64,000 bases of DNA from IMGVR_UViG_3300037502_002993:124001-188000, one strand, 5' to 3'; shown: positions 11,598 through 48,561, numbered from the stretch's first letter. Made by a program: numbers and translations. The notes: generated by a model from the letters alone, not told the origin.

Positions 11598-12443
11598 ATG
11601 ACCCAACACACTTTCCGTCAGCTGTACACTGCATTAGAAGAGTTTCGAGAGGTTGGCAATAACGAAACCGTCTCCAACGAAAGTATTCGTCAGTTCCTCA
11701 CTAACCGAGCTCCTAAGTTGGTCTCTTTATTGAGCGATGTGTTCCGCACCCTATCCACTTGGGATTATAGCCAGCCCGAAGTGCTCAATGTGCGTTCGAT
11801 CGAAGGGGTGCTCAGGAAAGCGGATTTCCAGGAGCTTGAAGGGGTGCTGATGATGAAGCCGGTGGGCTTCAATACCAAGCAGGGTCCTCTTGATGTGTAT
11901 GCCCAACAACTGCTTGACAGACAGGTGGACTCTCTGGTATTGACCAAGGATGTCCTGTCTCGTGTACAGGATGTGCTGAGTGGGTACGTGAGTGACCCTG
12001 AGGCACTCAAGGAGAGGGCTAGGGAGCCGCGAGTACTCAAGGAGCAACTCACTGCCCTTGCTCGGTACAAAGAGCGTGAGGCGCCCTGGTTGGTCGAGGG
12101 AAACCGCACCCACGAGGCTGACTTCACCGTCCTGTTCCATAACCTTAAAGCTTTCAGTGAAACCGCACGACTGGTCAATGCCGTGAACGCCAAACGCTGG
12201 TCAGTGGCCCCACCGAAAGAGGTGGCTATGCGCGGCCAATCCCTTAGTCGAGTAGCAGAAGCCCTTCAGCAGATAATGGAAGGGGGCGGTGTAGTGCCTC
12301 ATCGGGATACCCTTCTTCTTCTGGCCAGTGAGATCGAACTCGCTGCGCTTTGGCTTGAATGGTATTCCGTCCTCACTACTCGCATCATGGACCTGACGGC
12401 GGCTATGAAAACCAATGAACGTAAACTCATGAGGGTTCTGTAA
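11598..12443 (+). CDS. Putative virion structural protein
   Basis: ATG 11598 with GAGG SD; divergent from uvsX; stop overlaps the next start (TAATG). Confidence 0.6.
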   Translation: MTQHTFRQLYTALEEFREVGNNETVSNESIRQFLTNRAPKLVSLLSDVFRTLSTWDYSQPEVLNVRSIEGVLRKADFQELEGVLMMKPVGFNTKQGPLDVYAQQLLDRQVDSLVLTKDVLSRVQDVLSGYVSDPEALKERAREPRVLKEQLTALARYKEREAPWLVEGNRTHEADFTVLFHNLKAFSETARLVNAVNAKRWSVAPPKEVAMRGQSLSRVAEALQQIMEGGGVVPHRDTLLLLASEIELAALWLEWYSVLTTRIMDLTAAMKTNERKLMRVL

Positions 12444-13276
12444 TGAGGAATCGTCATTTAAGGGGCACTAGCTCACAGCTGAATCAGTTGAACATGGAGG
12501 CCGGTTCGTTAGCTATTGATACCGAAAAGAACGCTCTGCGCTTCTATGATGGAGAAACCCAAGGCGGGTTTGAGGTGTTAGGCACCCGGGCCTATGAACC
12601 CCCGCCTTTACCAGGGCCTCAAACACTGGTAGGAGGAGACCTCCAGGCGGGGTTCTATGGAGAAACCACTCCTGAGGAGTTCATCTCCTACGGTGCGTTA
12701 AGCACTTTGGTAGGGCTCTCCGCGGGGACCCTCCAGCATGATGCTGAATCCTTCTGGCTGAAGTTCAGTCTCGATGGGTCCCCGCTGTACGTCATGAAGA
12801 AGCCTGCACGACACACGGTGTCGTGGGATCAGCTGCACGCGGCGGGCCTGGTCTTTGGGACCAACACTGTGGAGATTGATGGACTCACCTACCAGGTCCG
12901 CCTCCTCAAAGGGGCCAACTCCGACCCCACCACCGATGCCACGGGCTGGGACATCCCCACCAGCCATGGGTCGGAGTGGAACCGACTCATCTACCCCGTG
13001 CACTCAGGCGTACACACCGACACCCGCAACCCCAGTGTGCACAGTGACCCCACGGCCGCGCCCTTCGGCGCCTGGGCGCAGTACAGTGACGCGGATCTGG
13101 TATTGCGTGGTACCGACAATGGTCGCGCCAACTGGTGTCAGGAAACCCCCGCCACCAGCACCAATCGCGTGCCTCGTGGTGCTTCTGGTGTTACGCGCTT
13201 GGATCGCGCTCCCTCTTCGTTTACGAATTCGACTTACGGTTGGAGAGCGGTACTCGTCCCCATCTTAGACAACTGA
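12443..13276 (+). CDS. Mtd-like receptor-binding protein, paralogue 1 (Mtd_N-like N-terminus plus C-type-lectin/FGE-like C-terminus; DGR-type target)
   Basis: N-terminal LRGT..QL...GSLAIDTEKNALRFYDGETQGG resembles Mtd_N; C-terminal WCQE...RVxRG..G..R......GWRAVL resembles CLec variable proteins. Confidence 0.75.
   Translation: MRNRHLRGTSSQLNQLNMEAGSLAIDTEKNALRFYDGETQGGFEVLGTRAYEPPPLPGPQTLVGGDLQAGFYGETTPEEFISYGALSTLVGLSAGTLQHDAESFWLKFSLDGSPLYVMKKPARHTVSWDQLHAAGLVFGTNTVEIDGLTYQVRLLKGANSDPTTDATGWDIPTSHGSEWNRLIYPVHSGVHTDTRNPSVHSDPTAAPFGAWAQYSDADLVLRGTDNGRANWCQETPATSTNRVPRGASGVTRLDRAPSSFTNSTYGWRAVLVPILDN
13169..13243 (+). repeat. DGR-like variable region VR1
   Basis: Aligns without gaps to 27485..27559 (-) and 48463..48537 (+); 14 of 25 codons identical, 11 vary as NNY. 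Confidence 0.8.
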
Positions 13277-13452
13277 TGGGCACTCACACCGCTCACCGAT
13301 GGAGGCGTGCAGTCCTCGTGCCGGTATAACGCCACCGTCACACGGACCGCCCACCACTGGGGGAGAGCAGTCCTCGTCCCCATCCTAAACGACTGATGAG
13401 CACTCACACCGCTCACCGATGGGGGCGTGCTGTCCTTCAGTTAGTTATCTAA
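13241..13452 (+). repeat. Array of four ~60 bp hairpin units (A-B-A'-C) encoding alternative C-terminal tails
   Basis: Units start TGG at 13241, 13300, 13358 and 13420 and read RAVLVPILDN*, RAVLVPV*, RAVLVPILND* and RAVLQLVI*. Confidence 0.85.
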
Positions 13453-13455
13453 AGT

Positions 13456-13490
13456 GACATAAACCCCTCCCGTAATGGGAGGGGTTCTTT
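13456..13490. terminator. Hairpin terminator
   Basis: AACCCCTCCC-GTAAT-GGGAGGGGTT then CTTT; GACATA on the left. Confidence 0.8.
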
Positions 13491-13525
13491 CTACGTTTAC
13501 GCAGAGTCGGTCTTCGGACCGACGT

Positions 13526-13975
13526 CTATGCTGTACCTTTAGAGTACTGACTCGTCTCTGGGTTTTGATACTGTTCTCTTAACCAAACCACTAACCGTTC
13601 AATGTCTTCTCGCCGCTGCTCAGCATCTGCATACCAAAGCCAACACGGGGTTTTCTTCACGAGGCGGTGCACATAGTGATCCTCGTTTTTCAGACAGACT
13701 CGGTAGATGGGTAGTAGGCGCTTCCACACCCAGCGTGATACCAATGCGGGAAACTTCATCTCCTTGGCCCTTGAGTTCAGTTCAAACTCCTGACTGAACG
13801 TCTGTAGGCGTTGGAGACTCATGTCTTCATCGTCGGTTAATCGCGCGTAGAGGGAAGTTAACACAAACATCCGTTTTAGTGAATCGGGTGTTCGGTACCA
13901 AAAGACAAACCAAATGATGACCAGGGGGTTATAGGTCTTGGTGTATGCTGTATGTATCAGCAACATGGAGATCAC
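13526..13975 (-). CDS. Hypothetical protein; start uncertain
   Basis: ORF overlapping the RNase H stop by 4 nt. Confidence 0.5.
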   Translation of the reverse strand: MISMLLIHTAYTKTYNPLVIIWFVFWYRTPDSLKRMFVLTSLYARLTDDEDMSLQRLQTFSQEFELNSRAKEMKFPALVSRWVWKRLLPIYRVCLKNEDHYVHRLVKKTPCWLWYADAEQRREDIERLVVWLREQYQNPETSQYSKGTA

Positions 13976-15489
13976 TCCTTTGGGATTAAGAAGTTGGTGT
14001 AAGGGGATTGGTACAAGATGTCACCCACTTCCGTTTCAATGATAAAACCGAAGCTGTAGCTAAAGGGCCCCCCTGCAATCAAAAACAGGGTGACTTTTGG
14101 CTTGTGATCCGCTAACCGCGCTAAGGTATTGCGTTCAGGAAGATCCACCCCAAGAAGTGCGGGGAGTTGTCGTGCCTTCCCTTTGTGCTCAAACCGAAAA
14201 ATCCATTTGGCCAGGCCATTGACGATCTCAGGCTTGAGCTTTAGTACGGGCTTAGGATCTTTTTTGCCCTTTAGCTCCTCAACGTAAAGTTGATCGGTAA
14301 CATCCACCTTCATTATCCCGCGTCCTTCCTTCCCTGCGAGGTGGTCTGTCAGTTGCCTTTGCATCCCATTGAACACATCAACCCCTTCCATGGCAAGCCC
14401 TGGGGGGTCAATGGTGATAGAAACCAACTCGTCTTGAACCGTTGTGATACTGCGGTTCATCGGGTTAACGATCAACCCCGTTGTCCCAAGGGTTAGGATG
14501 CGCTGTTTCACAGCTGGTTTAAATGCATGGTCGAGTCTCACTTTAACGAGGTCCACCACGTCCCTTACATGCGCTTGCTCGTGCTGCGTTTTTAGTAGTT
14601 CCAAAAACACATCAGGTTCATCAAGGCGCATGACACAGAAGGATGCATCCGCAATACGCCGTCCGAGAAGTAAGTCAGTTTTCGCATGACGCGTTAACAA
14701 ACTGTCTTCTTTCTTATGGGCGTAGTTTGACATGGCTCCCAGATGGTAGAAGTAATAGAACTGCCCCATGTCATTAGGTAGTGACTTCCCACCGATGGAA
14801 AATACCATACGGGTTTTCAAGATCAGAGGGTTATGGTCATTCTTGGGGTTGTGATAACCTTGGGGGTCGGATTCGCGCTTGATAAACGGGGCGGTCACCC
14901 CACCGCCGTTCTTTGCGTTAAGATCGGCCTGATCATTTCCAGGACACCCTGAGTGACCTTTTACCCACGTCCAAGTGATCTTACCGCCAATGGCCTGAAA
15001 GTCCGCTTCCTCTTTCTGGAGCGCCTCCCACAATTCACGATTGGCAACGTCGTTACCGGTTGTGGTTTTCCAGCCGTTCTTTGCCCAACGCTTAACCCAA
15101 CCCGTAATGCCCTTTCGGACGTACTCACTGTCGAGGCGTAAGGTAAGGGTCTTTACTTCGTAGTGGCGCGCTAATCGAATGCCCTCGACCGCCGCTTGCA
15201 GCTCTCCGACGTTGTTGGATTGACTTCCATTGACTCTGCCGAAAGCGTCAATGTAAAACAACGGCGTGACGGTTCCTGGGTACTCAACTTTATCATACCC
15301 TTCTTTGGTGGGAAGTGATTTGATACCGATCCCACGGGTTAATGGGGTGGCTTTGTACGCATAGCCGTGAATGCCCCATCCTGTCACTTGACGTCTAAAG
15401 CTGCCATCGATGTAGAGTACGAGCCCTTCCGCTTCTGACAGGGCAGATTCGAACGCTGAGCCTACCGTGTATTCTTTACGTACCGTCAT
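13972..15489 (-). CDS. rnhA: Ribonuclease HI with long C-terminal extension (phiKZ gp155-like)
   Basis: YIDGS, NNVGELQA, LDSEYVRKGITGW..W..NGWKT, WVKGHSGCPGNDQAD: the full RNase HI catalytic set. Confidence 0.92.
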   Translation of the reverse strand: MTVRKEYTVGSAFESALSEAEGLVLYIDGSFRRQVTGWGIHGYAYKATPLTRGIGIKSLPTKEGYDKVEYPGTVTPLFYIDAFGRVNGSQSNNVGELQAAVEGIRLARHYEVKTLTLRLDSEYVRKGITGWVKRWAKNGWKTTTGNDVANRELWEALQKEEADFQAIGGKITWTWVKGHSGCPGNDQADLNAKNGGGVTAPFIKRESDPQGYHNPKNDHNPLILKTRMVFSIGGKSLPNDMGQFYYFYHLGAMSNYAHKKEDSLLTRHAKTDLLLGRRIADASFCVMRLDEPDVFLELLKTQHEQAHVRDVVDLVKVRLDHAFKPAVKQRILTLGTTGLIVNPMNRSITTVQDELVSITIDPPGLAMEGVDVFNGMQRQLTDHLAGKEGRGIMKVDVTDQLYVEELKGKKDPKPVLKLKPEIVNGLAKWIFRFEHKGKARQLPALLGVDLPERNTLARLADHKPKVTLFLIAGGPFSYSFGFIIETEVGDILYQSPYTNFLIPKE

Positions 15490-15559
15490 GTGGCTATTCC
15501 ATTCCCTTAATGGTTAATCAAACTATTCCCTTCAGGCGTAGAAGATGACATAGGCCACA

Positions 15560-15982
15560 TTAACAGTCCTGTAGGTACTGGCGGTAGGCTTCCTCGTACT
15601 CCGCCCTGACTTCTGAGATGTAATGGCGTAGCTGGAGGATGTGTTCCACCAGTAACGCTTCCGATTCCTGATAACTTAAAGTGTCGATGCTTTCAGGTCT
15701 GGCAATCTCAGGAATGGGTGGAAAGGGTGGTTGATCATAAAACGAACAAGTGGTGTGGTCAGCGTCCGGCGCAGACACCGACTCGGGCACCAATACCCGC
15801 TCCACCACCGGTGGTTGGGGCAGTGGCTCTGGCGCAATGGTTTGCTGATCCACCATTACCGTCGTGTTGACTTCTGGGGACTTCACTACAATGGGAATTA
15901 CCAGAGGGGGTGGGGTATCTACTATGACAACACACCCTGACAAGCTCGCGCCCATCAATGCCCCCACCCAACCGCTCCTCAT
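15560..15982 (-). CDS. Lipoprotein, putative o-spanin
   Basis: AAGGAGG SD; MRSGWVGALMGASLSGC lipobox followed by a Pro-rich segment. Confidence 0.6.
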   Translation of the reverse strand: MRSGWVGALMGASLSGCVVIVDTPPPLVIPIVVKSPEVNTTVMVDQQTIAPEPLPQPPVVERVLVPESVSAPDADHTTCSFYDQPPFPPIPEIARPESIDTLSYQESEALLVEHILQLRHYISEVRAEYEEAYRQYLQDC

Positions 15983-15993
15983 GGTAAACCTCC

Positions 15994-16329
15994 TTATCGA
16001 AACAGTTCGCGCATTCTTCGATCGGCATCCCAATCGCCCGTCGCGGCACACTCGCCGCGCACGGTCTCGATCTCTTGGGCAATCACCGAAAGGCGCGCTT
16101 CCTGCCGCTCACTCTCACGTATCAGTTGACGATTCTCAGTCTGGAGGGCCGATACGTGTTTCATGGACACGAAAAAAGAGTAGGTCATCAGCAGGAACAG
16201 ACAGAACATGATCAGAAACAGTCGGTTCTTGGCTAAGACATACGTAACGGGGCGACCTCCGAAAACAACACGACCGACGAACGGCCATGCCCAGGTCAAC
16301 AACTTAAACGCTATCTTCAGGTATGTCAT
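15994..16329 (-). CDS. Inner-membrane protein, putative i-spanin
   Basis: GAGGT SD; one hydrophobic helix (LFLIMFCLFLLMTYSFFV) then a coiled-coil-like tail; stop overlaps the SD of the lipoprotein gene. Confidence 0.55.
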   Translation of the reverse strand: MTYLKIAFKLLTWAWPFVGRVVFGGRPVTYVLAKNRLFLIMFCLFLLMTYSFFVSMKHVSALQTENRQLIRESERQEARLSVIAQEIETVRGECAATGDWDADRRMRELFR

Positions 16330-16510
16330 GCTTACCTCGGTTGTCTCGTAGCTCGGTGGGCTGTATAGGCCCCGACACAGCATACTTCTTGAGACAACCC
16401 CACGTATTACACACTTGTCTTCTGTGGGATTTCCCTGCGTAATGCTAACTCCGGGCGATTTTATGATGGCTTAGGTGAATTGACTGACTCAACAACGGAG
16501 TATTGTCACT

Positions 16511-17848
16511 ATGTATCAACTGAAAGGCTTTTTCAAGTTCATCCCCCTGATCGACAATACCCGAGATCAGGTAGCACCTTTCGGGGAGATTTCAGATGAT
16601 GGGTTAACGTACGCCAAGGACAAGACCTACCACTCCTCCAATGCCCATCCCCAGACGGTACTGATCGGTTTCCACTCCAGTGAGGATGGTGACTACGCTC
16701 CCGTCTCAAATAGTGTAGCGGAGCGCGCCGTTCAGATCGGGCAGTGGCTGCTGGATCGTGCCCTGAATGGTCAGATCTCGGGAGACGTTCATCAGGTCCG
16801 TAATAGCCTGCAAAACGAATTCTCCTCAATGATCTCTCACGTGACCACAGGCGCACTGCTTGAAGAGGACGATCTACGTCTGCCTGAGTGGATCGGATAT
16901 CGTGATATAGCCCTTGGTGATGAGAATCAGATCCAGATCTGGCTTGCCGATGCCTCCTTCCGTCGTCAATATGACGAGTATGACATTGAGATCATCCCTC
17001 CGTTTGAGCCGCTCGATGATTTCTTTCAAGACCCCATCTTGGTGATCGGGAAGATCAACGACATTGACTTCGTTGAGAAGATGGAAGAGGTACAGGCCCG
17101 CCGTGGGGAGTATCCTTATACCCAACTGTTAGCGCAGCGCTATGATTACGTCCATCCAGCGGACCCCAATAACCGGACCCCCACCAAGTGGGTCGTGTTG
17201 GTATACGGTCAAGCGGGCAATAACCCTGACCTGATCCGCAATGAGATCATCGACTACGTACTTGAGAACAGCACCCGGGACCGTGAAGAGTGGGCAGTCA
17301 TTTTGCCCGACCTGTTCATGGCAACCGAGTACGTCATCACGCCCTTCTGGCACCAGTACAGCGTCCCTAACCGTGAGATGCAGGCAGGCATCCACTCCCC
17401 CATCATCAAGCCCCAGGAAAGCCTTGAGCTGTTAAAGCGCACCACACGAGGCAGTGGCTTTGATGACGCTTGGGTAGCCGCAGAACACCAATACAGCATG
17501 GTGATCTATAAGTCCCTGGCTTTCGGGGCGGTGGGCAATGCCCAGAACCGTGATGGGATCTATGGCCTGAAAGAGCGCTTTACCGATTACATGGTTGTGA
17601 CCAACCAGAGTGCGGATTTCAACCGCATGAGCGTTAGGACCCAGGACTTTATCAACCTACTCAACTCCCTGATCCAGATCGCTGAGACTCTCACCCCCAC
17701 CAGTGATGTCCCGGTGGGGTACGCGCGCCTGGTCCGTGATGGGGTGGTCTATATCACCCGGCAGTATGAGCAGGTGCTCTACCTGGTAGCGGGACGACGC
17801 AGTGTGGAGCTTGCTTATGATGAGGTAGTGGAGGCAATGAATGGCTAA
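16511..17848 (+). CDS. Conserved phiKZ-like virion structural protein
   Basis: 445 aa ORF, MYQLKGF start as in related structural proteins I recall; context. Confidence 0.6.
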   Translation: MYQLKGFFKFIPLIDNTRDQVAPFGEISDDGLTYAKDKTYHSSNAHPQTVLIGFHSSEDGDYAPVSNSVAERAVQIGQWLLDRALNGQISGDVHQVRNSLQNEFSSMISHVTTGALLEEDDLRLPEWIGYRDIALGDENQIQIWLADASFRRQYDEYDIEIIPPFEPLDDFFQDPILVIGKINDIDFVEKMEEVQARRGEYPYTQLLAQRYDYVHPADPNNRTPTKWVVLVYGQAGNNPDLIRNEIIDYVLENSTRDREEWAVILPDLFMATEYVITPFWHQYSVPNREMQAGIHSPIIKPQESLELLKRTTRGSGFDDAWVAAEHQYSMVIYKSLAFGAVGNAQNRDGIYGLKERFTDYMVVTNQSADFNRMSVRTQDFINLLNSLIQIAETLTPTSDVPVGYARLVRDGVVYITRQYEQVLYLVAGRRSVELAYDEVVEAMNG

Positions 17849-18956
17849 TCTCAGCGATGCGCTGGTGGGGTTTGGTCAGGCAGTGCGGGCACGGTTTCGC
17901 ACGCCCTTTAATACCCAGAACCAACTCCTCACAGGGGGAGAGCAGGGGTTCGCTGCGCGCCCCACTGCGTTAACCGTAGGGTTTGTGCAGACCGATGAAG
18001 AGTTAGCGTTTCAGCAGGAGCAGGAAGAGTCGTTCGGTACGGTGTTCAACGAGTGGACCCGTATCTCACGGATGACGGCTGAGCGTGATACGCTACATGC
18101 TAACGGCGACAGTAATAGCGATGCAGCACTGCCGAGTGAATTAAACGCCTGGGACTTCAACCCCACTACCGAACGCATCACCTGTACGATCAACTCCGAG
18201 ACCCTGCTTGGGTTTATCTCCAATGAACGCTATAATAACTACACTCTAGAGGTGAGACTAAACTCCAACAACAGCGACGATGACTTCATCGGACTGTGTA
18301 TCGCGCACGCCCAGGACAGCTCAGGGAAGACCCACATTCTAACGGCCATTCGTGGGTATAATGCCCGTGCCCCACTGGTGATCGATAAGAACTACTGGGC
18401 ACACACAGCGGACAATTGGATTGATAATCCGAGTGAATATGAGGTAGCGCGAGTGTACAGTGGCCTTCAGTGGGCCGACGGTACCACCACCACCACCCCC
18501 ATAGCCAACGGCAGTCGTGGTGGGTGGAATGCAGTCTCTAATGGAGTGCTCTTAAAGATCACCCGAGAGGATGATCTTATCACCGTGGAGACCAGTCTCA
18601 ATAATGGGACCAGTTATCACGAACCCGCTAAGCGAGTGATTGATCTGTCCATGGACCCAGAGCTTGAGGTCTTTCGAGGGCCTCAGCGGTATGGGTACGT
18701 GTGTCACTCACAAAACGCCAGTACGTTTGATGTGTTAGATCGTGTCACTGAACGACACCCCATTGTCGACACCCGCAATTATCGTCTGTATGTGTTTGAA
18801 GGGGGTAATTGGGTCGTCAAATCGGATGGACTGCCAGCACTTATCGCCAGTGGCGTTTTAGTGCCCAATCAACTCCACATGAACCCCATCACTGGTCGGT
18901 TCTATTACATGCGGGGTGAGGAGAGCCTAGACCTGATCACCGCCCCCAGCGAGTAA
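17841..18956 (+). CDS. Putative virion appendage protein with lectin/ConA-like domain
   Basis: TLEVRLNSNNSDDDFIGLCIA resembles the DDD motif of thrombospondin-C-type lectin domains; beta-rich. Confidence 0.5.
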   Translation: MANLSDALVGFGQAVRARFRTPFNTQNQLLTGGEQGFAARPTALTVGFVQTDEELAFQQEQEESFGTVFNEWTRISRMTAERDTLHANGDSNSDAALPSELNAWDFNPTTERITCTINSETLLGFISNERYNNYTLEVRLNSNNSDDDFIGLCIAHAQDSSGKTHILTAIRGYNARAPLVIDKNYWAHTADNWIDNPSEYEVARVYSGLQWADGTTTTTPIANGSRGGWNAVSNGVLLKITREDDLITVETSLNNGTSYHEPAKRVIDLSMDPELEVFRGPQRYGYVCHSQNASTFDVLDRVTERHPIVDTRNYRLYVFEGGNWVVKSDGLPALIASGVLVPNQLHMNPITGRFYYMRGEESLDLITAPSE

Positions 18957-18966
18957 GGAGCGACCC

Positions 18967-19374: not shown

Positions 19375-19378
19375 GGCA

Positions 19379-19786: not shown

Positions 19787-19789
19787 ACC

Positions 19790-27244: not shown

Positions 27245-27487
27245 GGGCGTTACCATCCCTCAACGCGTATTCTCATTAGACCACGGGGGTCAAAGCGGCA
27301 CGCCCCCACTGGTGGGCGGTGTGAGTGCCCATCAGTTGTCTAAGATGGGGACGAGTACCGCTCTCCCCCAGTGGTGGGCGGTCCGTGTGACGGTGGCGTT
27401 ATACCGGCACGAGGACTGCACGCCTCCATCGGTGAGCGGTGTGAGTGCCCATCAGTTGTCTAAGATGGGGACGAGTACCGCTCTCCA
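27245..27487 (-). repeat. Array of four hairpin units (A-B-A-D) encoding alternative C-terminal tails
   Basis: On the minus strand A and B are identical to locus 1; the last unit (27276..27308) reads WGRAALTPVV*. Confidence 0.85.
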
Positions 27488-28288
27488 ACCAAAATGCGAA
27501 TTCGTACCCGAAGAGGTACTGCGACCCAAGAACGTAACACCAGAAAGACCACGATGCACGCGCTGGGTGCTGGTGGCGGTGGTTTCTTGACACCAGTTGG
27601 CGCGACCATTGTCGGTACCACGTAATACCAAATCACTGTCACTGTACTGCGCCCAGGCGCCGAAAGGCGCGGCAGTGGGGTCGGTGTGCACCGTGGGGTT
27701 ACTGGTGTCGGTGTGCACACCGGAGTGGATGGGGTACAACAACCGGTTCCACTCCGACCCGTGGCTGGTGGGGAGGTCCCAACCCGTGGCATCGGTGGTG
27801 GGGTCGGAGGCAGCACCGCGCAGCAGGCGGACCTGGTAGGTGAGTCCATCAATCTCCACAGTGTTGGTCCCAAAGACCAGGCCCGCCGCGTGCAACTGGT
27901 CCCACGACACACTGTGTCGTCCCGGTTTCTTCATGACGTACAGCGGGGACCCGTCAAGGGAGAACTTGAGCCACGCCGACTCGGCATCATGTTGCAGGGT
28001 CCCCGCGGAGAGCCCTACTAGGGTACTCAGGGTACCGTAGGAGATCAACTCTTCAGGAGTAGTTTCACCGTAGAACCCCGCCTGGAGGTCTCCTCCAATC
28101 AAGGTTTGGGGACCCGGTCCCGTAAATACCGGCTCATACGCCCTAGTCCCCAGGATTTCAAAACCACCCTGTATGTCGTCGAGGTGAAAGCGTAACGCTT
28201 TCTTCTCTAAATCGACAGCCATCATCCCTTCAGGTAGATTGAGTGTGTTGTTAAAGGCGGTATCGCCATGAGTAAGTTTTGTCTTCAT
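27452..28288 (-). CDS. Mtd-like receptor-binding protein, paralogue 2 (DGR-type target)
   Basis: 278 aa; near-identical core to paralogues 1 and 3; divergent N-terminus; GGAGGA SD. Confidence 0.75.
   Translation of the reverse strand: MKTKLTHGDTAFNNTLNLPEGMMAVDLEKKALRFHLDDIQGGFEILGTRAYEPVFTGPGPQTLIGGDLQAGFYGETTPEELISYGTLSTLVGLSAGTLQHDAESAWLKFSLDGSPLYVMKKPGRHSVSWDQLHAAGLVFGTNTVEIDGLTYQVRLLRGAASDPTTDATGWDLPTSHGSEWNRLLYPIHSGVHTDTSNPTVHTDPTAAPFGAWAQYSDSDLVLRGTDNGRANWCQETTATSTQRVHRGLSGVTFLGRSTSSGTNSHFGWRAVLVPILDN
27485..27559 (-). repeat. DGR-like variable region VR2
   Basis: See VR1 alignment. Confidence 0.8.
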
Positions 28289-40756: not shown

Positions 40757-42304
40757 TAAAACTCTACCCTACTGTATAGTTTTTTCAGTAGAGGTAAGTG
40801 ATAATGGGACAACCACTTAAGTATACAACTGAAGATTTTATTGACACAGCTACCATGATGTTCGGTGACCACCTTAGCTACGAGAAAGCCGTTTATAGGG
40901 GTAAACGTCAGCGCCTTATTGTAACATGTACGCACCACGGGGAGTTCGATGTAAACCCACTGGTGTTTCTGATGAGTACCCACGGCTGCGCCAATTGTGC
41001 TAGGGATGAAACAAAAGAACGCTTCATACGTCGTTCTTTGGAACTTCATGGTGATCGTTACGACTATAGTCTCGTTGAAGTGGACGGATATACAGACCCT
41101 GTTACGGTTGTCTGTAAAACCCACGGTGCATTCGAAACATCTATTTACGGACATTCTGTAAGGGGCAATCAGTGTCCTAAATGTTCACGAGAACGCGACC
41201 GTACCTGCCCTAACGAGTGGATTAAAAAAGTTAAGAAGATCCACAAGGGTAAGTACGACTATAGTAAGGCAGTCTACATTCACGGTAAGTTGCCAGTTAC
41301 GATTATCTGTCCGCACCACGGGGAGTTCACCCAGCCAGCACGCTCCCACTACGCGGGACATGGATGTAAGCAGTGTCATATTCAGTTTGTTGCTAGGTCG
41401 AATAAAGAGAGATTTGTTAGGCAGGCCAAAGAAAAACATGGTGTTCAGTATGATTACAGCCGCGTAGTGTTTTTGACGACAAAGGAAAAGGTTGAGATAC
41501 TCTGTCGTAAACACGGACCGTTCTGGGTAACCCCGAACGCGCACGCATCTAGTGGCGCGGGCTGTCCACGCTGCATTGAGTCAAAGGGTGAACGAAGAAT
41601 TAGATTATTCCTAGGGAACCATAAAGTTCGGTTTATTCAGGAATATCGGATCGAACCCTTCAGGTATAGATACGATTTCTTCTTACCTGATTACAACTGC
41701 GTAATAGAACACCATGGTGGTCAGCACTACATGCCTGTTAAACGTTTTGGAGGGGAAAAAGCCTTTAAGCAATGTGTGCAGCGAGATAAGAACAAAAAAC
41801 ACATCGCAAAAAGGAAAGGGATTACTTATCGAGTCACTAACTACAAAATGATGAACAACAGCAAACTCGAAAAGAATTTAACCCGCATCCTTCTAGAACT
41901 CGGTCACTCTCTCGACCACTAACCCATTATTACCTATGGTCCGCTTAAAACCCCCCTAACTGCGGGAACCTGCTAATGATGCTGTTACTACCACTTGTCG
42001 GGGGAAACCCACGGCAACACCCACTCCAGTAATGGAAGTAGTGGGCAGGGTAAAAACGTAACAGCTAGGCACAACCGACGCAACGAAGTCCCTACGTTGG
42101 TCAATCGACCAATATGGGATGTGTTCAGAGGCCATCGAAAACTACAGCTTGTTTAATGCAAGCCTAATGACACAGGTATAGAACCCTGTGGTCTCCACGG
42201 AGATTAAAGTGAGTAGAGTAGCTGATTTCTATATCGGCGAAACGGGGGGCTTCTGTTTGCTATTCACGAACCAGAAGAAGATATGGTCCAATTTGAATTG
42301 ATTG
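40757..42304 (+). mobile_element. Group I intron (1548 nt) carrying a homing endonuclease in the P1 loop
   Basis: Exon ends in U and intron ends in G. Core elements P (AACTGCGGGAA), Q (ACCGACGCAAC), R (GTTCAGAGGCCAT) and S (AAGATATGGTCC) are present. IGS GTCCGC at 41939..41944 pairs with exon GCGGAT. Confidence 0.88.
40804..41922 (+). CDS. Intron-encoded homing endonuclease: four DUF723-like Cys/His repeats plus C-terminal Vsr/DUF559-like (EDxHD-type) nuclease
   Basis: Repeats Y..V.Y......V.I.C..HG.F...P..H..G..CP.C; C-terminal ESKGERRI...YDFFLP...IEHHGGQH; visibly more AT-rich than the flanks. Confidence 0.8.
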   Translation: MGQPLKYTTEDFIDTATMMFGDHLSYEKAVYRGKRQRLIVTCTHHGEFDVNPLVFLMSTHGCANCARDETKERFIRRSLELHGDRYDYSLVEVDGYTDPVTVVCKTHGAFETSIYGHSVRGNQCPKCSRERDRTCPNEWIKKVKKIHKGKYDYSKAVYIHGKLPVTIICPHHGEFTQPARSHYAGHGCKQCHIQFVARSNKERFVRQAKEKHGVQYDYSRVVFLTTKEKVEILCRKHGPFWVTPNAHASSGAGCPRCIESKGERRIRLFLGNHKVRFIQEYRIEPFRYRYDFFLPDYNCVIEHHGGQHYMPVKRFGGEKAFKQCVQRDKNKKHIAKRKGITYRVTNYKMMNNSKLEKNLTRILLELGHSLDH

Positions 42305-43743
42305 CTTCCAATTCGTAAGATCTCTCCAAGCAGGGTTGCTCTCACCTCTTACTATAATAAAACGTTTGTCGACCGCTCTTCTCGCTCTACGAATAACTTT
42401 GCTCAATGGGTCACACGCCAAATGACCCAGATCGGACTTGATCCGGATAACGACCAGATCACTAACCTGAAGTTAGGTAATGCGTTTGATCAGTCCATTG
42501 AAGTGCCAAGGGTTTACTCCTTGCTCTCAGCGCGCTTTACGCAATTTGCCGTAGGGCCACTACAGTTCTACTTGAGCTACCATAAACGAGCTGCTCATTT
42601 TGAACAACATGGGATACGGGTAGAACAGGTAGAGAAAGAAGGGCGAACGGTAATCGGGATGGATCGTGAGTCATTAAGTCCCATCACGGTAGATGCCAGT
42701 GACACTTTCTATCTGGGCGATGAGCCCTTAGGTACTCTGTGTCAGGTAGTGGGACTTCCCGAAGCCAAAGCACCGCTGGATATCGCGGAGGTAGGGGTTT
42801 CCAATAAGGTCATCCCGGTGGGGTTGGTGCTGGCTTACCAGATGGGGCTGTCTAAACTCATCGAGAAACTTAATTGTGATGTGGCCAGACACCGACGGGG
42901 CAGTCGGTTTGAAATGGCCGATGATGAGTACAGTGTGGTCTTTCAGGATGAGGTGCTTGTCTTCTCGCGGTTGGATCGACGGGCCTCACTGGTGTTGGCG
43001 GGACTGAATCGCTATCACCGCGCCCTACGGCAATTCAGTGTCTGGGACTTTGATCGTAAAGACGTCTACCACAACGTCCTTCTGGATCAGGGCCTTGGGG
43101 TGCGCTACCTGCGGGAAATCGATACCCTCTTTAATGTCTGGGTTGATCCCATCACAAAAGGACTCCTGGAGGAGATGGGGGAACCCACTGACTTTGGAGG
43201 ACTGCTCCTCAGAAGTGCTGACCTACTGCTACACGACCACGCTCCCAATGAGGTAGAAGGGGAGTACATGCGCTATCGGGGGTATGAGCGCATGGCAGGG
43301 ATGGTCTATGGGGAGCTGGCGAGGGCCTGCAAAGCCTATCACGCGCGCAGTCACTACGGTGATGCTGCAGTGGATCTAAATCCCCACCAGGTGTGGCAGC
43401 GCATTGTGGGTGACCCCTCATCCATGATCGTGGAGGAAGCCAACCCCTTTACGGTGGTCAATGAACAGGAAATCATGACCTATCGTGGAGATGGCGGTCG
43501 TAGTGGTAAGTCCATGGTGAAGCGGACGCGTATCTACTCTGACACTGATGTCGGGGTAGTGAGTGAATCCACCCTAGATTCGGGAGATGTCGGGGTAGTG
43601 GCGTACCTGGCCCCTGATGCGAACTTCACCTCCACTCGGGGATTGACCCGACGTTACGATAAAAGTAAGGATGGCGCAGCAACCCTCCTATCCACTGCTG
43701 CACTCAATGCCCCTTGTGCGGACAGAGATGACGCCAAGAGAAT
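42305..43743 (+). CDS. rpoB: Virion RNAP beta subunit, exon 2
   Basis: LPIRKISP...SESTLDSGDVG...ADRDDAKR-AT; continues exon 1 in frame after splicing. Confidence 0.85.
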
Positions 43744-44203
43744 CCGATAAGTTGGTTCCCCCAGCAGGTAACTGTTGGGTAAACACTCCTCTAATTGCTG
43801 GGACCTCTCGTAAGACCTTAGGTACGATCCCGTTCCGAAAGGAAGCCATGGATAGCCGGGCCTGTAAGAATCCTAAGGATAGAGACAACCATGCAGCGAA
43901 GTCCCTAAGCCTACTCAACGAGTAGGGATGGGATGTGTTCATCGACTATCGAAAGGCGCCCATTAGGGCGAACTGAGTAGAGTAGGGCCAAGCGGTAGGC
44001 CGCTAACGTGGAATGGCGTTAGTTATAAGTCCTTTAAACCGAAACGGGGAGCTTCCTACTTGTTAAGAGAGGAAGAAGATATAGTCAGTCCTTTAGCGAG
44101 AGTTAAAGGTAACCATGGAGTGGTTAGCTCGATCTAGCGAATCGGGTTTGGAAAGGGAAGGAGGATTTCACCCAATTAGGGTGATCTTCATCTGTGTACA
44201 GCG
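43744..44203 (+). ncRNA. Group I intron (460 nt), no endonuclease ORF
   Basis: P (AATTGCTGGGA), Q (CCATGCAGCG), R (GTTCATCGACTAT) and S (AAGATATAGTC); removal restores DDAKR-I-NFISVQ; exon GAAU pairs with GUUC at 43755..43758. Confidence 0.88.
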
Positions 44204-45332
44204 CAACTTTATCTCAGTGCAAGCAAGACAGGGCATTTGGGCGGAAGGGTATACGGTCACGCCACTAAGGACGGGGTATGAACAGGTACTGGCCTCACGG
44301 GTAACAGATCTGTTCGCGACCATGGCACAGCAAGATGGGAAGGTTACGTCAGTGGAAGAGAATTCCATTGTGGTGACCTATAAGGATGGGACGCAGGAGA
44401 AGGTCCTTCTTGGGAAGCGCTACGGTAAAGCCGCTGGGTATACCTACCCACAGACCTTGGTAACGGATCTAAAGGTAGGGGATAAGGTTAAGTCAGGTGG
44501 GGTGATTGCGTATAATCGTAACTATTTCATGCCTGATACCTTTAATCCCGGTCATGTGGTATTGAAAGCGGGGGTAATGTGTAAGGTGGCCCTGATGGAC
44601 CCCATCGATGCTTTGGAAGATGGGTCTGTTATCTCTGAGGAGATCGCCAAGCAGTTCACCACGCAAACCAGTGAGGTCAGGACCCTGCAAGCGCGTTTTG
44701 ATCAGTCTGTCAGGGACCTAGTGAAAGTCGGCGATCATGTGGACTTGGATTCCATTCTATGCATTATTGAAGACCCGGAGATCCGCGATAATCCCCTGTT
44801 CAATGACATTGCCATGGATACCTTAAGAAAGCTCTCTTCCCACACCCCACGAGCAAAAGTGACAGGGGTGGTGAGCCGAGTTGAGGTGTTCTATCATGGT
44901 GAGTTTGAGGACATGTCAGAGTCCCTTCAAGGTGTGGCGGGTCAATCCAATCGTCGTCGCCGTCAAGAGGCCAAGGCCTCAGGGCAGCCCGCTTTCGATG
45001 GTCAGGTGGATACGGGCTTTCGTATCCGTGGGGCCGCCCTTGATCCGGATAGCGTGGCCATTCAGGTGACCATTGATCATGACGTGGGGGTAACTGCGGG
45101 GGATAAGTTGGTGTACGCCAGCCAGCTGAAGTCCGTCATTTCTCGTGTCATGACGGGTCGTAATGAAACCGAAAGCGGTGAAGCCATCGATGCCCTCTTT
45201 GGTAACACCTCTGTGGAGGATCGGATGGTGTTGTCCCCCAAACTCATGGGCACCACCAATACCCTACTCCGGGTCCTTTCCCAACATATCGCATCTGTCT
45301 ATCGAGGACGTAGTGATGTCAAGAGACCGTAA
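44204..45332 (+). CDS. rpoB: Virion RNAP beta subunit, exon 3
   Basis: NFISVQ...LRTGYE...EDGSVISE...GDKLVYASQLKSVI (GDK motif of beta). Confidence 0.85.
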
Positions 45333-45525
45333 GAAGATCAGTCCCGATCTCCTCTACACGCAAAACCTGGCCGTGGTCAGTGCCGCCCTTGAATTGGGCG
45401 GCTGTGTCCTGTGTGAGGTCGCCGGTGGCGAAGAGCTCTCCAATCGCCTCAATGATAAAACCCATGAGAAGAAGGACTTCCAGGAACTCCTGGCAGCCCG
45501 CCTGATGGTCAAACTGGGAGTCTGA
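45316..45525 (+). CDS. Small hypothetical protein
   Basis: ATG 45316 with GAGG SD; 69 aa. Confidence 0.55.
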   Translation: MSRDRKKISPDLLYTQNLAVVSAALELGGCVLCEVAGGEELSNRLNDKTHEKKDFQELLAARLMVKLGV

Positions 45526-45528
45526 ATC

Positions 45529-47001
45529 ATGCTGTCACCCTGTACTATCCATAATGCCCGTCAGGTAGCCACCTCACTGACGGAAGCCAAACGTGAAGCC
45601 CGCGCTAAATCCAGCCACTACCCACTAGGGCAGTTGACCGACCGCCTTGAAGTCGGGGCCCCGATGCTCAAGCGCAGTGTGAACTATGAGGGGTATGAAA
45701 AACTCACCCAGCGTTTTAAAGAAGTCAATGAGGTGACCAGTGCGCAGAGCGAAGAGTTCTTTCGTGATCTGGTGAAGGTGACCAGTGACGGGGTGAACAA
45801 CATGCTCCACCTGTCGCGTAATGTGGTGGTTCCGCTGATCAAGCGCTGCGCGCAAGATGTTCAGTACTACTTTGAGGACCGCCATCCGGAACTCAAAATC
45901 CAGCCGGTCTCACTGACCCCCTTGTTGCAGTCTGACGTCCTGCTGCAGCACCTTCAGGATTATCCAAAACAATACGGGGTTAAGGAAGAGTACAAGACCT
46001 TTATCCTGGCACCCCCCACCATTGAGCAACTGCGCGAATGGGCCGCCCAGACCCCGCACATTGAGAGTGATCTCATCAAGCGCTGGCTTGGGAAGGTGGA
46101 GGATGAGGATCTGCTTGGGGTATTCAGTACCCTCTTCAATGACAAACGCGTACTGAATGTGGACGACCTTTACTTTGCGCGTCCCCACACTCTGGTATGG
46201 CATGCCGATCTCCTGCTCTTTGCCTACTTCCTGACCAGCTACCTGCGGGATAACCCCCAGGACACCGTTGATGATGGAGCCAGTCTTGCAGAGTGGGAAA
46301 CCGCACTGGGAGACCTTCACGGTTATATGGGTCTGCGCCTGATTGAGCTTAATGAGCGCCGGGCTCGTCTGAAACGCGAAGGGCGCCTGGTCCTGAATTA
46401 TGATGATCGGGTAGCGGGTGATGGCATGCATGTGTACATCAACCCCGATCTGGTGGATGAGTGGCAGGCCAAAGGGGGCACCGCTGGCATGTTGCTGGCG
46501 GCGGGTTACGTCGACCCCATGCTGACCCGCATCGATGCACTCATGGCAGAGAAGGACGCCCTGGAGGCCTTTTGGGCACGCAAACACAAAGCCCTGAAGA
46601 TGCATTCCAACGCCGCCAATAAAGCCAATCGTCGTGGTCACTATCGCATGATCATGGAAACCACGTCAGGTGATGGGGAAGACGGTCTCCCTAAGGTGGG
46701 GCATGACGTGTGGAAGGAGCGTCTTAACGACTCCCTGGCAGCGCTCTCTGAAGATGACATGGAGAAGCCCTATTACGCCATCACGGAGTTGGTGTGTGAC
46801 TGCTACTTTCCTGGAACGGCCATTAAGGACTTCCTGAGGACCATGGAACGTTGTGGGGTGGATATCCATGCCCGTGAAGCAGCTACATTCGCTACCGTTG
46901 AGGTACTCGCCTCCTGGATGGCAGAGCAGATCAAGGTGGAGGCGGTTGAGCTTGACCTTGCAGGGGAAGAGAACGGCAAGCAAGTGCTCGCCAACGCTTA
47001 A
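45529..47001 (+). CDS. Conserved phiKZ-like hypothetical / virion protein
   Basis: 490 aa in the operon between gp178-like and gp175-like genes. Confidence 0.6.
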   Translation: MLSPCTIHNARQVATSLTEAKREARAKSSHYPLGQLTDRLEVGAPMLKRSVNYEGYEKLTQRFKEVNEVTSAQSEEFFRDLVKVTSDGVNNMLHLSRNVVVPLIKRCAQDVQYYFEDRHPELKIQPVSLTPLLQSDVLLQHLQDYPKQYGVKEEYKTFILAPPTIEQLREWAAQTPHIESDLIKRWLGKVEDEDLLGVFSTLFNDKRVLNVDDLYFARPHTLVWHADLLLFAYFLTSYLRDNPQDTVDDGASLAEWETALGDLHGYMGLRLIELNERRARLKREGRLVLNYDDRVAGDGMHVYINPDLVDEWQAKGGTAGMLLAAGYVDPMLTRIDALMAEKDALEAFWARKHKALKMHSNAANKANRRGHYRMIMETTSGDGEDGLPKVGHDVWKERLNDSLAALSEDDMEKPYYAITELVCDCYFPGTAIKDFLRTMERCGVDIHAREAATFATVEVLASWMAEQIKVEAVELDLAGEENGKQVLANA

Positions 47002-47015
47002 TGGGAGTGTGACCG

Positions 47016-47738
47016 ATGGATGTGACCACCCTAGTGCGTGATCCGGATTATATCACACGCCACCTGGTCGTAACTGATGGGGGTGGGGTGGTCACTCGCC
47101 GCCCCACCAAGATCATGATTCCTGAACGCTACGCTGAACGCCATCTCGCCTCCCTAGGGGGCGAGACGTATATTCTCGGACTGTTTGGGATCATTATGGA
47201 TGAGAAGTACTATGGGGTTTCCTTTGTGAACGCCATGGTGCGCATTACCCCAAGCTCCACCACCACAGTAGATGTTGGCGGAGATGCCTATTTGGAGTTT
47301 TCATTTGAACCAGGGGACCAGGTCATCTATAGTTTAGACCTGGTGAAGAACGACATTCTGACCTTTTACATCTACGATGAACATGTGGCGAAGGGCAGAA
47401 TCCCTTGGTACATGAATTACCTAGATCTGGCCTATCTGTTTGACAGCGCCAAAGAGCATGCTGGGATGAACTTGGGTAACCGTGCTGTATTGGAGCTGAT
47501 GCTCTCCACCATTGCCCGCGACTCCAATAATGTCGGGGCGTTGTATCGCCACATCATGCAGGGTCTCACTTACGTTTACCAAATCCCCCCGAAATGGATA
47601 CCATTTAGAAGCGTGATCTGGAACACCAGTGATACCACGAGTAAATTGATCGGGGGGTATTTCAGTGATGCCGTAACGTCAGCCCTGGTCAACCCTAGTG
47701 AGCGGGTAGAGCGGATTGAGGGACTTTTGAGGACGTGA
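47016..47738 (+). CDS. Conserved phiKZ-like virion structural protein
   Basis: 240 aa; GGAG SD; context. Confidence 0.6.
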   Translation: MDVTTLVRDPDYITRHLVVTDGGGVVTRRPTKIMIPERYAERHLASLGGETYILGLFGIIMDEKYYGVSFVNAMVRITPSSTTTVDVGGDAYLEFSFEPGDQVIYSLDLVKNDILTFYIYDEHVAKGRIPWYMNYLDLAYLFDSAKEHAGMNLGNRAVLELMLSTIARDSNNVGALYRHIMQGLTYVYQIPPKWIPFRSVIWNTSDTTSKLIGGYFSDAVTSALVNPSERVERIEGLLRT

Positions 47739-47739
47739 T

Positions 47740-48561
47740 ATGAAAACACGCTATTTGAGGGGCACTCGTGCACAGTTAAATGCCCTAAATCTCCCTGAGG
47801 GGAATTTAGCTATTGATGTAGAAACCAAGGCTTTACGGTTCTTTGATGGAGAAACCCAAGGCGGCTTTGAGGTCCTGGGAACACGGGCCTATGAGCCCTC
47901 ACCTCCTGGACCCACTGAGTTAATTGCGGGTGATTTAACCACTGGTTTTTATGGCGAGGTGGGGCCTGAGGAGTTCATCACCTACGGTGCCCTGAGTACC
48001 TTGGTTGGGTTGAGTGCGGGGACCCTCCAGCATGATGCTGAATCCCTCTGGCTGAAGTTCTCCCTCGATGGGTCCCCGCTGTACGTCATGAAGAAGCCTG
48101 CACGACACACGGTGTCGTGGGATCAGCTGCACGCAGCGGGCCTGGTCTTTGGGACCAACACGGTGGAGGTCCAAGGACTCACCTACCAGGTCCGCCTGCT
48201 GCGCGGTGCTGCCTCCGACCCCACCACCGATGACATCGGCTTCGACATCCCCACCAGTCATGGGTCGGAGTGGAACCGGTTACTGTACCCCATCCACAGT
48301 GGGGTCCACACCAACACCAATAACCCCACGGTGCACACTGACCCCACTGCTGCGCCTTTTGGGAGCTGGGCACAGTACAGTGACAGTGATTTGGTATTAC
48401 GTGATACCGACAATGGTCGCCTCACCTGGTGTCAAGAAACCGCCGCCACCAGCACCCAGCGCGTGTATCGTGGTAATCCTGGTGTTACGACCTTGTTTCG
48501 CAATACCTCTTCGACTACGCGTTCGGATGTCGGTTGGAGAGCAGTCCTCGTGCCGGTATAA
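47740..48561 (+). CDS. Mtd-like receptor-binding protein, paralogue 3 (DGR-type target)
   Basis: 273 aa; same core; ends with the B-type tail RAVLVPV*. Confidence 0.75.
   Translation: MKTRYLRGTRAQLNALNLPEGNLAIDVETKALRFFDGETQGGFEVLGTRAYEPSPPGPTELIAGDLTTGFYGEVGPEEFITYGALSTLVGLSAGTLQHDAESLWLKFSLDGSPLYVMKKPARHTVSWDQLHAAGLVFGTNTVEVQGLTYQVRLLRGAASDPTTDDIGFDIPTSHGSEWNRLLYPIHSGVHTNTNNPTVHTDPTAAPFGSWAQYSDSDLVLRDTDNGRLTWCQETAATSTQRVYRGNPGVTTLFRNTSSTTRSDVGWRAVLVPV
48463..48537 (+). repeat. DGR-like variable region VR3
   Basis: See VR1 alignment. Confidence 0.8.

Follow-up and report, generated by a model that had tools for sequence, protein, structure and literature searches.

At least five paralogous virion protein genes of a nucleus-forming, phiKZ-like jumbo phage end in 25 codons that show the signature of a diversity-generating retroelement (DGR), and a homologue of the DGR accessory gene avd is located directly after one of them, but no intact template repeat was found on the 220,598-nt contig and no reverse transcriptase (RT) in the 97% of it that was read. 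The window, i.e. the whole stretch of DNA analysed at first, comprises 64,000 nt (positions 124001-188000 of contig Ga0310151_0000032). A sequence-only reading of the window had described three Mtd-like genes with a DGR-type variable region and neither an RT nor a template repeat nearby. This observation was confirmed and proved to be larger than described, since two further genes of this type lie outside the window and the five together span 129 kb.

Variable 3' ends of the paralogous genes

The three target genes in the window, A (12443-13276, + strand, 277 aa), B (27452-28288, - strand, 278 aa) and C (47740-48561, + strand, 273 aa), encode proteins with 79-80% amino acid sequence identity. 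Their last 25 codons before GGT TGG (13169-13243, 27485-27559 and 48463-48537, on the strand of the respective gene) align without gaps. Fourteen codons are identical at all three positions, including the silent ones, while eleven vary, ten of which retain the third base; the exception is TAC/TTT/GTC. The pattern of invariant positions, with the variable positions set to N, occurs three times in the window and was not found in 100 shuffled sequences. Ordinary third-position divergence had been named in advance as an outcome that would speak against a DGR, and the upstream parts of the same genes served as internal control. Variable columns at codon positions 1/2/3 amount to 60/46/124 in 241 upstream codons, but to 11/9/1 in the 25 codons of the variable region (Fisher p = 1e-5), and the chance that none of the 14 fixed codons differs at position 3, given the upstream rate, is 4e-5. 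Variation is thus confined almost entirely to positions 1 and 2, as expected for AAY template codons.

When seven variable regions (the five paralogs and two orthologs, see below) were compared, the 51 invariant columns contained a single A, whereas the gene is 21% A (p = 1e-4). The template derived from these seven sequences is the A-rich one predicted by the sequence-only reading. The upstream parts of the five paralogs differ by 12-40%, and the invariant positions of A, B, C and E carry no substitutions at all outside the variable columns. A few exceptions to the pattern were observed: the one A (GTT ACG) is invariant in all seven variable regions, three third-base changes fall in columns that otherwise hold only T or C, which adenine mutagenesis should not touch, and the variable region of D has a codon deletion and one non-A change.

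Two orthologous genes (at loci L004 and L005) were found in a 95-98% identical phage from another metagenome (Ga0194138). Both keep the invariant positions but carry different variable codons. D and L004 differ at 11 of 72 nt in the variable region (15%) compared to 28 of 822 nt outside (3.4%, p = 1e-4), and B and L005 differ at 13 of 75 nt (17%) compared to 13 of 828 nt in the flank (1.6%). Hypervariability between closely related genomes is therefore confined to the variable region, while within-sample polymorphism, which had been proposed as a test, was not examined, as no reads were available. The variable region of D is identical in samples 3300037502 and 3300035670, so that no sign of turnover is seen on the shortest timescale.

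Downstream of the variable regions, imperfect palindromic units of approximately 58 nt are located, which occur only 3' of variable regions. In gene A, an array of three units (u1, u2, u1'; 13244-13420, +) is inserted between GGTTGG and the original gene end and supplies the present C-terminal tail and stop codon. The displaced original 3' end (TGGGGGCGTGCTG... up to TAA; 13420-13452, +) was recognised by comparison with genes lacking the units (D, L004 and L005). Gene B is followed by a u1-u2-u1 array (27311-27484, -), which is absent from L005, where the displaced 3' end of B (27272-27310, -) directly follows GGTTGG. Gene C is followed by a u2-type unit and u1 in inverted orientation (48538-48650, +) and then by its displaced 3' end (48650-48692, +). 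Unit insertions split the GGTTGG|CGTGCCGC boundary in four of the five targets. A hairpin follows the variable region directly in A, B and E (z = -2.9 to -3.1; -2.9 for u1 of A), while in C the same unit comes second in the array (z = -4.0) and D has a smaller one (z = -0.4). All variable regions end at GGTTGG, but the sequences behind it differ between targets and the IMH is not definable without the template, which leaves this feature of a DGR undecided here. Identity among A, B and E continues for 115 nt past the variable region, which is not predicted by canonical homing.

Avd and the search for template and reverse transcriptase

The statement that no RT or template repeat is nearby holds for the window itself. 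However, a 115-aa gene product matching Avd is encoded 243 nt after target E (L016:11174-11521, L016 being the locus that contains target E), 8 kb before the window, or about 9 kb upstream of its start when taken together with the template-like remnant described below. It matches Avd in three libraries over nearly its full length (NCBIfam NF033474, 3e-9, positions 2-95 of 104; PHROG 3206, 5.6e-8; Pfam bAvd PF22296, 1.5e-5) and has a pI of 8.95. The reading frame is intact. All scores are below the curated cut-offs, BLASTP against BPP-1 Avd gave no hit, and tblastn against phage records found no match. Starting 42 nt after the avd stop codon, 21 of 27 nt, including an exact run of 14 nt, match the first 27 nt of the predicted A-form template; similarity is lost thereafter. 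None of 300 shuffled sequences reached this score, and it is the best hit outside the variable regions in the 214 kb read. The next gene encodes a DUF4376 tail-fibre-like protein and not an RT in all three samples that carry avd.

A search of the remaining genome and of other replicons for the predicted template and a DGR-clade RT had been suggested as a check, and neither was found in the sequence covered. Patterns of the invariant positions retrieved only the variable regions in all of IMG/VR, including the whole contig, only the two orthologous variable regions in the JGI metagenome collection (which does not hold the phage's own sample, since the variable regions of the window were not found there) and nothing in 185,579 species-representative GTDB genomes. 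Sensitive blastn of the predicted template against the window and the 214 kb read returned only the variable regions and, as the single other match, the decayed remnant after avd. For the RT, a profile built from seven DGR RT sequences (HMM search with --max) and tblastn against all six-frame ORFs of 214,089 of 220,598 nt gave no hit below E = 0.6, and no RVT family appears in the JGI Pfam tables; positions 1-4343 and 62937-65102 (6.5 kb) were not read. A 96-aa frame at the edge of the 2.2-kb unread gap is an antisense artefact of a 742-aa gene, and a sixth member of the family runs into the unread left end of the contig.

A scan of the window and 15 further loci (L001-L015) for repeat pairs with mismatches falling on A flagged one candidate (125 nt, six mismatches, all at T), which is the shared end of IS605/TnpB elements and not a DGR; loci retrieved later were compared with the predicted template only. 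The 505-aa gene product encoded next to gene A has a weak RVT_3 hit, but is the conserved PhiPA3 gp178-type RNase H of these phages and not part of a retroelement. A 51%-identical homologue (P0012) lies on a phiKZ-like contig that ends 217 nt after the gene and shows no RT.

Phage affiliation and the target protein family

The phage belongs to the Chimalliviridae. A chimallin (PF25677, Chimallin_Phikzvirus) is encoded at L030:3165-5144 (another locus of the contig), the major capsid protein is 51% identical to that of PhiPA3-like phages, and RNA polymerase beta fragments, the gp29 sheath, phiKZ_IP proteins and a DNA polymerase were identified. The targets are members of the phiKZ gp83/PhiPA3 gp080 family (PHROG families 1062 and 16120 for gene A), which is annotated in cultured relatives only as virion structural proteins. 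blastn of gene A against 50,697 phage records gave no hit, and two exact-protein look-ups gave none either, because the database assigns different start codons.

Homology of the N-terminus to Mtd_N is weak but specific. Mtd is the only hit of the family profile among PDB sequences (E = 0.004, residues 3-54) and PF18454 is recorded on several homologues, although the three proteins of the window gave no Pfam hit at E <= 0.1 and target E has a different N-terminus. The C-type lectin fold is only suggested. The AF2 models are confident (pLDDT 94 and 97) and the best PDB matches of the C-terminal domain model (PorK, SenA and EgtB) are all FGE-sulfatase-type C-type lectin (CLec) domains, with pFGE and langerin appearing in addition for the full-length model, but with E = 0.03-0.7 for the best domain matches, up to 5 overall, and TM <= 0.31 these matches do not decide the fold in either direction. 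Whether the variable residues form one surface, also proposed beforehand as a test, was not examined, since they were not mapped onto the models.

Origin of the variable regions and comparison with known systems

The most likely explanation, with a probability of about 0.8, is that the last 25 codons of at least five paralogous virion proteins were written by DGR-type mutagenic retrohoming. In this view, cDNA copied from one shared A-rich template (AAY at the 11 variable codons), with adenines misread at random, replaced the 3' end of each gene up to the GGTTGG boundary followed by an inverted repeat, so that one sequence overwrote all of them, and the decayed template copy after avd would mark where a target-avd-TR-RT cassette once lay. 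The codon signature, the shared invariant positions, the turnover between near-identical phages, Avd, the hairpins and the absence of the template rest on direct evidence, while adenine mutagenesis itself, a receptor-binding role and the whereabouts of the RT are inferred. The interpretation given in the sequence-only reading is thus supported in part. The DGR signature, the jumbo phage and the Mtd_N-like N-terminus were borne out, whereas the targets are five over 129 kb rather than three over 35 kb, the system is not entirely remote because Avd is encoded next to the fifth target, and diversification in trans from one remote template is an inference, present-day activity not having been established.

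The RT-template module might have been lost recently, lie in an unassembled part of the genome or lie on another replicon, and the data do not choose between these. Tentatively, the phage lineage might have had a DGR at the E-avd locus that is now a relic, in which the template decayed, the RT was deleted and the five variable regions and Avd are recent fossils that no longer change. This is in line with the six mismatches in the remnant, the gene following avd, the unit insertions, the state of the D variable region and the lack of a template on a contig of a size normal for a complete Chimalliviridae genome that carries chimallin, capsid, sheath, RNA polymerase subunits and DNA polymerase, but not with the unsubstituted invariant positions of A, B, C and E, the turnover after the split from a 95-98% identical lineage and the intact Avd frame; moreover, 6.5 kb are unread and completeness of the genome was not determined. 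These observations would fit an active DGR with its module elsewhere in the same genome, as would the sixth family member running into the unread left end of the contig, and repeats such as a template next to five variable regions are typical places for assemblies to break. This possibility is only slightly less likely than a relic; against it, the pattern scans cover the unread 6.5 kb as well and find no template, and templates normally lie within a few hundred bases of the RT (Wu et al. 2018, PMC5758913), so that an RT in the unread part would lack its template.

Supply of RT and template in trans by a host chromosome, prophage, satellite or co-infecting phage is unlikely. DGR functions of BPP-1 reportedly work in trans from plasmids, and RT and template are absent from the contig as far as it was read, but nothing matching the template was found in the GTDB genomes, the chimallin shell excludes most cytoplasmic proteins from phage DNA (PMC11087766), so that a foreign RT-Avd complex would need to be imported, and targets on a lytic phage would not be inherited together with a template elsewhere (PMC5758913). 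Similarly unlikely, though not excluded, is that the phage keeps only the receiving half of a DGR (five or more targets plus Avd) and is diversified from a different replicon or a physically separate genome segment; cDNA or the RT-Avd complex would then have to cross the chimallin shell, and the variable region-plus-hairpin blocks copied to several targets would reflect a non-canonical 3' integration step. Diversifying selection on a binding surface combined with gene conversion among paralog 3' ends, without a retroelement, is very unlikely. The identity of A, B and E beyond the variable region and a chimeric gene in another sample (B-type N-terminus, D-type variable region), which shows that paralogs do recombine, speak for it, but gene conversion would homogenise the variable codons as well, and selection does not fix third bases while randomising bases 1 and 2, nor does it leave 51 invariant columns with a single A. 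The avd gene beside one target and the lack of such conserved positions among the paralogs of a more distant relative (L014) also argue against it.

Full-text literature searches ranked no paper linking DGRs to phiKZ-like or nucleus-forming phages, and a 2021 survey of 224 jumbo phages reported no DGR-type FGS/C-type lectin domains in them (PMC7824862). If the signature reflects a working system, the large family of paralogous virion structural proteins of Chimalliviridae would be adaptable ligand-binding proteins, a lytic phage would diversify five or more of them at once from one template, and the question would arise how reverse transcription products reach DNA enclosed in the phage nucleus. 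If the RT is truly gone, the locus would be a clean natural example of DGR decay, in which Avd and the targets outlive RT and template.

The phiKZ gp83/PhiPA3 gp080 family shares clear sequence and fold homology with the targets (tblastn down to 7e-42, Foldseek E down to 1.6e-24) and has several paralogs per genome, but no cultured member is known to be hypervariable, the paralogs of L014 share no common invariant positions, and none of 60 rows sampled evenly down the ranking of the 155 phage records with a Brt-like RT is a jumbo phage. In DGRs with several non-adjacent targets, such as that of Treponema denticola with seven, one template likewise serves dispersed paralogous targets sharing the variable-region sequence. 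In the survey of Wu et al. 2018 (PMC5758913), targets more than 100 kb from the RT were found almost only for cellular, non-phage DGRs and phage-associated DGRs had targets within about 50 kb, whereas here the targets alone span 129 kb of a phage genome and the RT was not found. The DGR of Bordetella phage BPP-1 (mtd-avd-TR-brt) differs in having one main target in a 42-kb temperate phage instead of five or more in a nucleus-forming jumbo phage, an intact template and Brt, a variable region of 134 nt instead of about 75 nt, and a longer target protein (381 compared to 273-309 aa), the C-terminal domain of the proteins described here matching CLec/FGE folds only weakly. Shared with BPP-1 are the variable region at the extreme 3' end of a gene for a virion protein with an Mtd_N-type N-terminus, the NNY codons expected from AAY template codons, avd directly downstream of a target, a template-like sequence immediately after avd and, in A, B and E, an inverted repeat directly after the variable region.

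Variable 3' ends of five paralogous genes

Three ORFs in the window, A (12443-13276, plus strand), B (27452-28288, minus strand) and C (47740-48561, plus strand), encode proteins of 273-278 amino acids, which are 79-80% identical to each other. In a DNA alignment, the last 25 codons before GGT TGG were found at exactly the positions given for them in the sequence-only reading (13169-13243, 27559-27485 and 48463-48537, respectively). Fourteen of these codons are identical at every base, while eleven vary, ten of which keep the third base. A pattern made of the invariant bases, with N at the variable ones, matched three times in the window and never in 100 shuffles. Upstream of this stretch, variable columns fall 60/46/124 on codon positions 1/2/3, whereas within the 25 codons they fall 11/9/1 (Fisher p = 1e-5). 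The chance that none of the 14 fixed codons shows a third-base difference, at the upstream rate, is 4e-5. The codon pattern described from the sequence alone is confirmed. On the strand opposite the coding sequence of gene C (48256-48332, minus strand) ARAGORN called a tRNA-His, which is probably a false positive, since no such call was made in the paralogs.

The contig (IMGVR_UViG_3300037502_002993, JGI record Ga0310151_0000032; 220,598 nt), in which the window occupies positions 124001-188000, belongs to a phiKZ-like phage according to PHROG and tblastn results. It encodes a major capsid protein 51% identical to PhiPA3-like phages, split RNA polymerase beta subunits and a 2172-aa tail-fibre-like protein. 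The JGI gene tables add chimallin (PF25677), the gp29 sheath, phiKZ inner-body proteins and gp85/86/91. The earlier guess of a nucleus-forming jumbo phage is supported. A 502-aa tail-fibre-like ORF (window 65-1573), which matches many tail-fibre PHROGs, contains three tandem 183-nt repeats (469-1017; 63-77% identical). A 131-aa gene (L017:17646-18041, in a locus retrieved during the analysis) carries the Pfam domain Acb2_Tad1_hairpin of the anti-CBASS/anti-Thoeris sponge family, and an 859-aa protein (L031:14177-16756, from the left part of the contig) contains a LAGLIDADG_3 homing-endonuclease domain, which may be an intein or intron-type insertion in a large gene.

Whereas three such genes had been reported before, a protein-pattern scan and a homologue search revealed two more on the same contig with the same 3' end. 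Gene D is located at contig positions 43265-44089 (L009:10001-10825, L009 being the contig segment around it) and has one codon deleted inside its variable region. Gene E is located at 115278-116207 (L016:10001-10930, the corresponding segment; 309 aa), has a different N-terminus, and one of its two ACG codons reads GCG. Due to these small differences the exact patterns missed both genes. The five targets span 129 kb. A sixth, shorter family member (209 aa; L031:20122-20393, contig about 3989-4615, minus strand) starts near contig position 4615 and runs into the left end of the contig, which was not read, so that its 3' end and the sequence following it were not seen. At least four IS605/TnpB (Cas12f-like) genes are encoded on the phage contig (L009:892-1866 and 16945-18171, L022:12089-13306 and L028:19816-21033, with a solo element end at L009:11388-11512), one of them next to an HNH endonuclease.

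A metagenome scan returned two short contigs of sample Ga0194138. One of them (L005) is the ortholog of the B locus, with the same dUTPase-side flank at 98.4% identity, and the other (L004) is the ortholog of the D locus at 95-98% identity. L004 directly joins the sequences before and after two 125-nt element-end repeats that are 5.4 kb apart in the contig studied here, so the related phage lacks that stretch. Both orthologs keep the invariant positions and carry different codons at the variable sites. D and L004 differ at 11 of 72 nt in the variable region compared to 28 of 822 outside (p = 1e-4), and B and L005 differ at 13 of 75 nt compared to 13 of 828 in the flank. Over all seven variable regions (five paralogs and two orthologs), 24 of 75 columns vary, and the 51 invariant columns hold T20, G18, C12 and A1 in a gene that is 21% A (p = 1e-4). 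Every observed variable codon is NNY except for three third-base changes. A template with AAY at those codons and random misreading of adenines predicts exactly this pattern, while gene conversion or selection does not. The 25 codons further upstream keep ten invariant As and group by ordinary phylogeny (A, E and L004 against B, C and D); the rewritten stretch is therefore about 75 nt.

An Avd gene and the search for template and reverse transcriptase

Directly downstream of target E, just outside the window, a 115-aa gene is located (L016:11174-11521), the product of which matches the DGR accessory protein Avd over almost its whole length in three libraries (NCBIfam NF033474 at 3e-9, PHROG 3206 "Avd protein of DGR" at 5.6e-8 and Pfam bAvd at 1.5e-5). 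All three scores are below the curated cut-offs, and BLASTP against BPP-1 Avd shows nothing. Avd is described as very poorly conserved (Wu et al., PMC5758913). The protein is basic, with a pI of 8.95. In BPP-1 the template repeat begins right after avd. Here, 42 nt after the avd stop codon, 21 of 27 nt match the first 27 nt of the predicted A-form template, including a 14-nt exact run that contains GGT AAT ACT GGT. No shuffle out of 300 reached either value, and this is the best hit of the predicted template outside the variable regions in the 214 kb read. After those 27 nt the similarity ends, and the next genes encode a DUF4376 tail-fibre-like protein, a DUF1353 protein and a muramidase. The same avd-DUF4376 arrangement, 100% identical, occurs in two other samples. 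In another sample (3300035670; L020, a sequence of 1434 nt, protein P0004), a gene with the N-terminal part of B and the variable region and tail of D lies directly upstream of avd, which is either recombination between paralogs or an assembly chimera across repeats.

The sequence-only reading had proposed to look for the A-rich template and a DGR-clade RT in the rest of the genome and beyond it, and neither was found. No intact template exists on the contig. Two different patterns of the invariant positions, scanned over all of IMG/VR, found only variable regions, and a control pattern showed that the scan covers the stored contig without gaps. Nothing was found in the GTDB species genomes. 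For the RT, contig positions 4344-62936 and 65103-220598 were read, i.e. 214,089 nt or 97%. An HMM built from seven phage DGR RTs (BPP-1, VP585, BalMu-1, a crAss-like phage, Lagaffe, Bacteroides phage p00 and Cruim01) was run without filters on all six-frame ORFs of 40 aa or more, and tblastn was run with the same seven sequences; neither gave any hit better than E = 0.6. The unread 6.5 kb could hold an RT but not a template of this sequence, and templates normally sit next to the RT. No RVT family appears in the JGI Pfam tables. A 505-aa RNase H protein encoded next to gene A (window 13972-15489, minus strand) has a weak RVT_3 hit, but is a full-length homologue of PhiPA3 gp178, a conserved Chimalliviridae gene, and not part of a retroelement.

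The target protein and its 3' boundary

The targets belong to the multi-copy "virion structural protein" family of phiKZ-like phages, which includes phiKZ gp83 and PhiPA3 gp080 (best values 7e-42 in tblastn and 1.6e-24 in Foldseek against BFVD). The N-terminal 50 residues are Mtd_N-like: PF18454 is recorded on many homologues, and Mtd is the only PDB sequence found by the family profile (E = 0.004). AlphaFold models are confident (pLDDT 94 for the full length and 97 for residues 60-278). With the full-length model, the five Mtd entries rank first in the PDB at E of about 1e-3, but with poor superposition. With the domain alone, the top hits are PorK, SenA and EgtB, all of which carry FGE-sulfatase-type C-type lectin domains, but at E = 0.03-0.7 and TM <= 0.31. 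The lectin fold is therefore suggested, not shown. In a more distant relative (L014), two paralogs share no common invariant positions, and the family as such is not always DGR-marked. One paralog of this relative ends in an Asn-rich stretch written largely with AAC/AAT codons before WRP (L014:10560-10650), which resembles an undiversified, template-like variable region.

In A, B, C and E, the sequence between GGTTGG and the original gene end is filled by two kinds of approximately 58-nt imperfect palindromes, u1 and u2, a feature for which no explanation was found. The arrays are u1-u2-u1' in A (window 13244-13420), u1-u2-u1 in B (27311-27484), u2-u1(inverted) in C (48538-48650) and u1-u2 in E (L016:10898-11012). 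They now encode the C-terminal tail, while the original end is still recognisable further downstream as TGGGGGCGTGC... The u1 unit folds as a hairpin (z = -2.9 to -4.0). The units occur nowhere else in the 214 kb read than directly 3' of these four variable regions, and are absent from D and from both Ga0194138 orthologs. Since u1+u2 are 100% identical in A, B and E, the block shared by the targets is thus the variable region plus about 115 nt. The units may serve as the post-IMH cruciform, or they may have spread with aberrant homing products or by conversion between paralog ends; the data gave no basis for a choice between these. Canonical homing, whose 3' limit lies inside the IMH (the sequence that marks the 3' boundary of homing), does not predict a shared block of this extent.

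Origin of the variable tips and comparison with known systems

DGR-type retrohoming is considered the origin of the variable tips with a probability of about 0.8. What the analysis shows is that these tips were written like those of a DGR target, whereas membership in the DGRs fails on two defining parts, the template and the RT, as far as they could be tested; the adenine mutagenesis itself is inferred. The sequence-only interpretation was thus borne out in part: the DGR-type pattern, the Mtd_N-like N-terminus and the phage type were supported, but there are five targets over 129 kb instead of three over 35 kb, and the single remote template acting in trans was not found.

The present state of the system is open. 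A relic is a tentative reading, to which the decayed remnant, the missing template, a D variable region that is damaged and identical in two samples, and a contig of normal genome size with all major modules point, i.e. to a cassette that died recently. On the other hand, intact invariant positions in four targets, turnover since the split from a 95-98% identical lineage and an intact Avd point to a module that still exists; its location in the same phage but off this contig is possible, at slightly lower confidence than the relic. Supply in trans from another replicon is unlikely and is made harder by the chimallin barrier, which excludes most cytoplasmic proteins (PMC11087766).

A full-text literature search surfaced no paper linking DGRs with phiKZ-like phages, and no FGS/CLec domains were reported in 224 jumbo phages by Iyer et al. 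(PMC7824862). Among 155 phage records with a Brt-like RT, none of the 60 rows sampled evenly down the ranking is a jumbo phage. The closest system is the BPP-1 DGR, which shares the target type as far as the Mtd_N-like N-terminus, the avd placement and the AAY logic; an inverted repeat also follows the variable region in A, B and E, and comes second in the array in C, but the IMH cannot be defined without the template, and neither an intact template nor an RT was found here in the sequence searched. Multi-target DGRs are known. However, in the survey of Wu et al. (PMC5758913), phage-associated DGRs had targets within about 50 kb and targets beyond 100 kb belonged to cellular DGRs, while the five targets described here span 129 kb of a phage contig.
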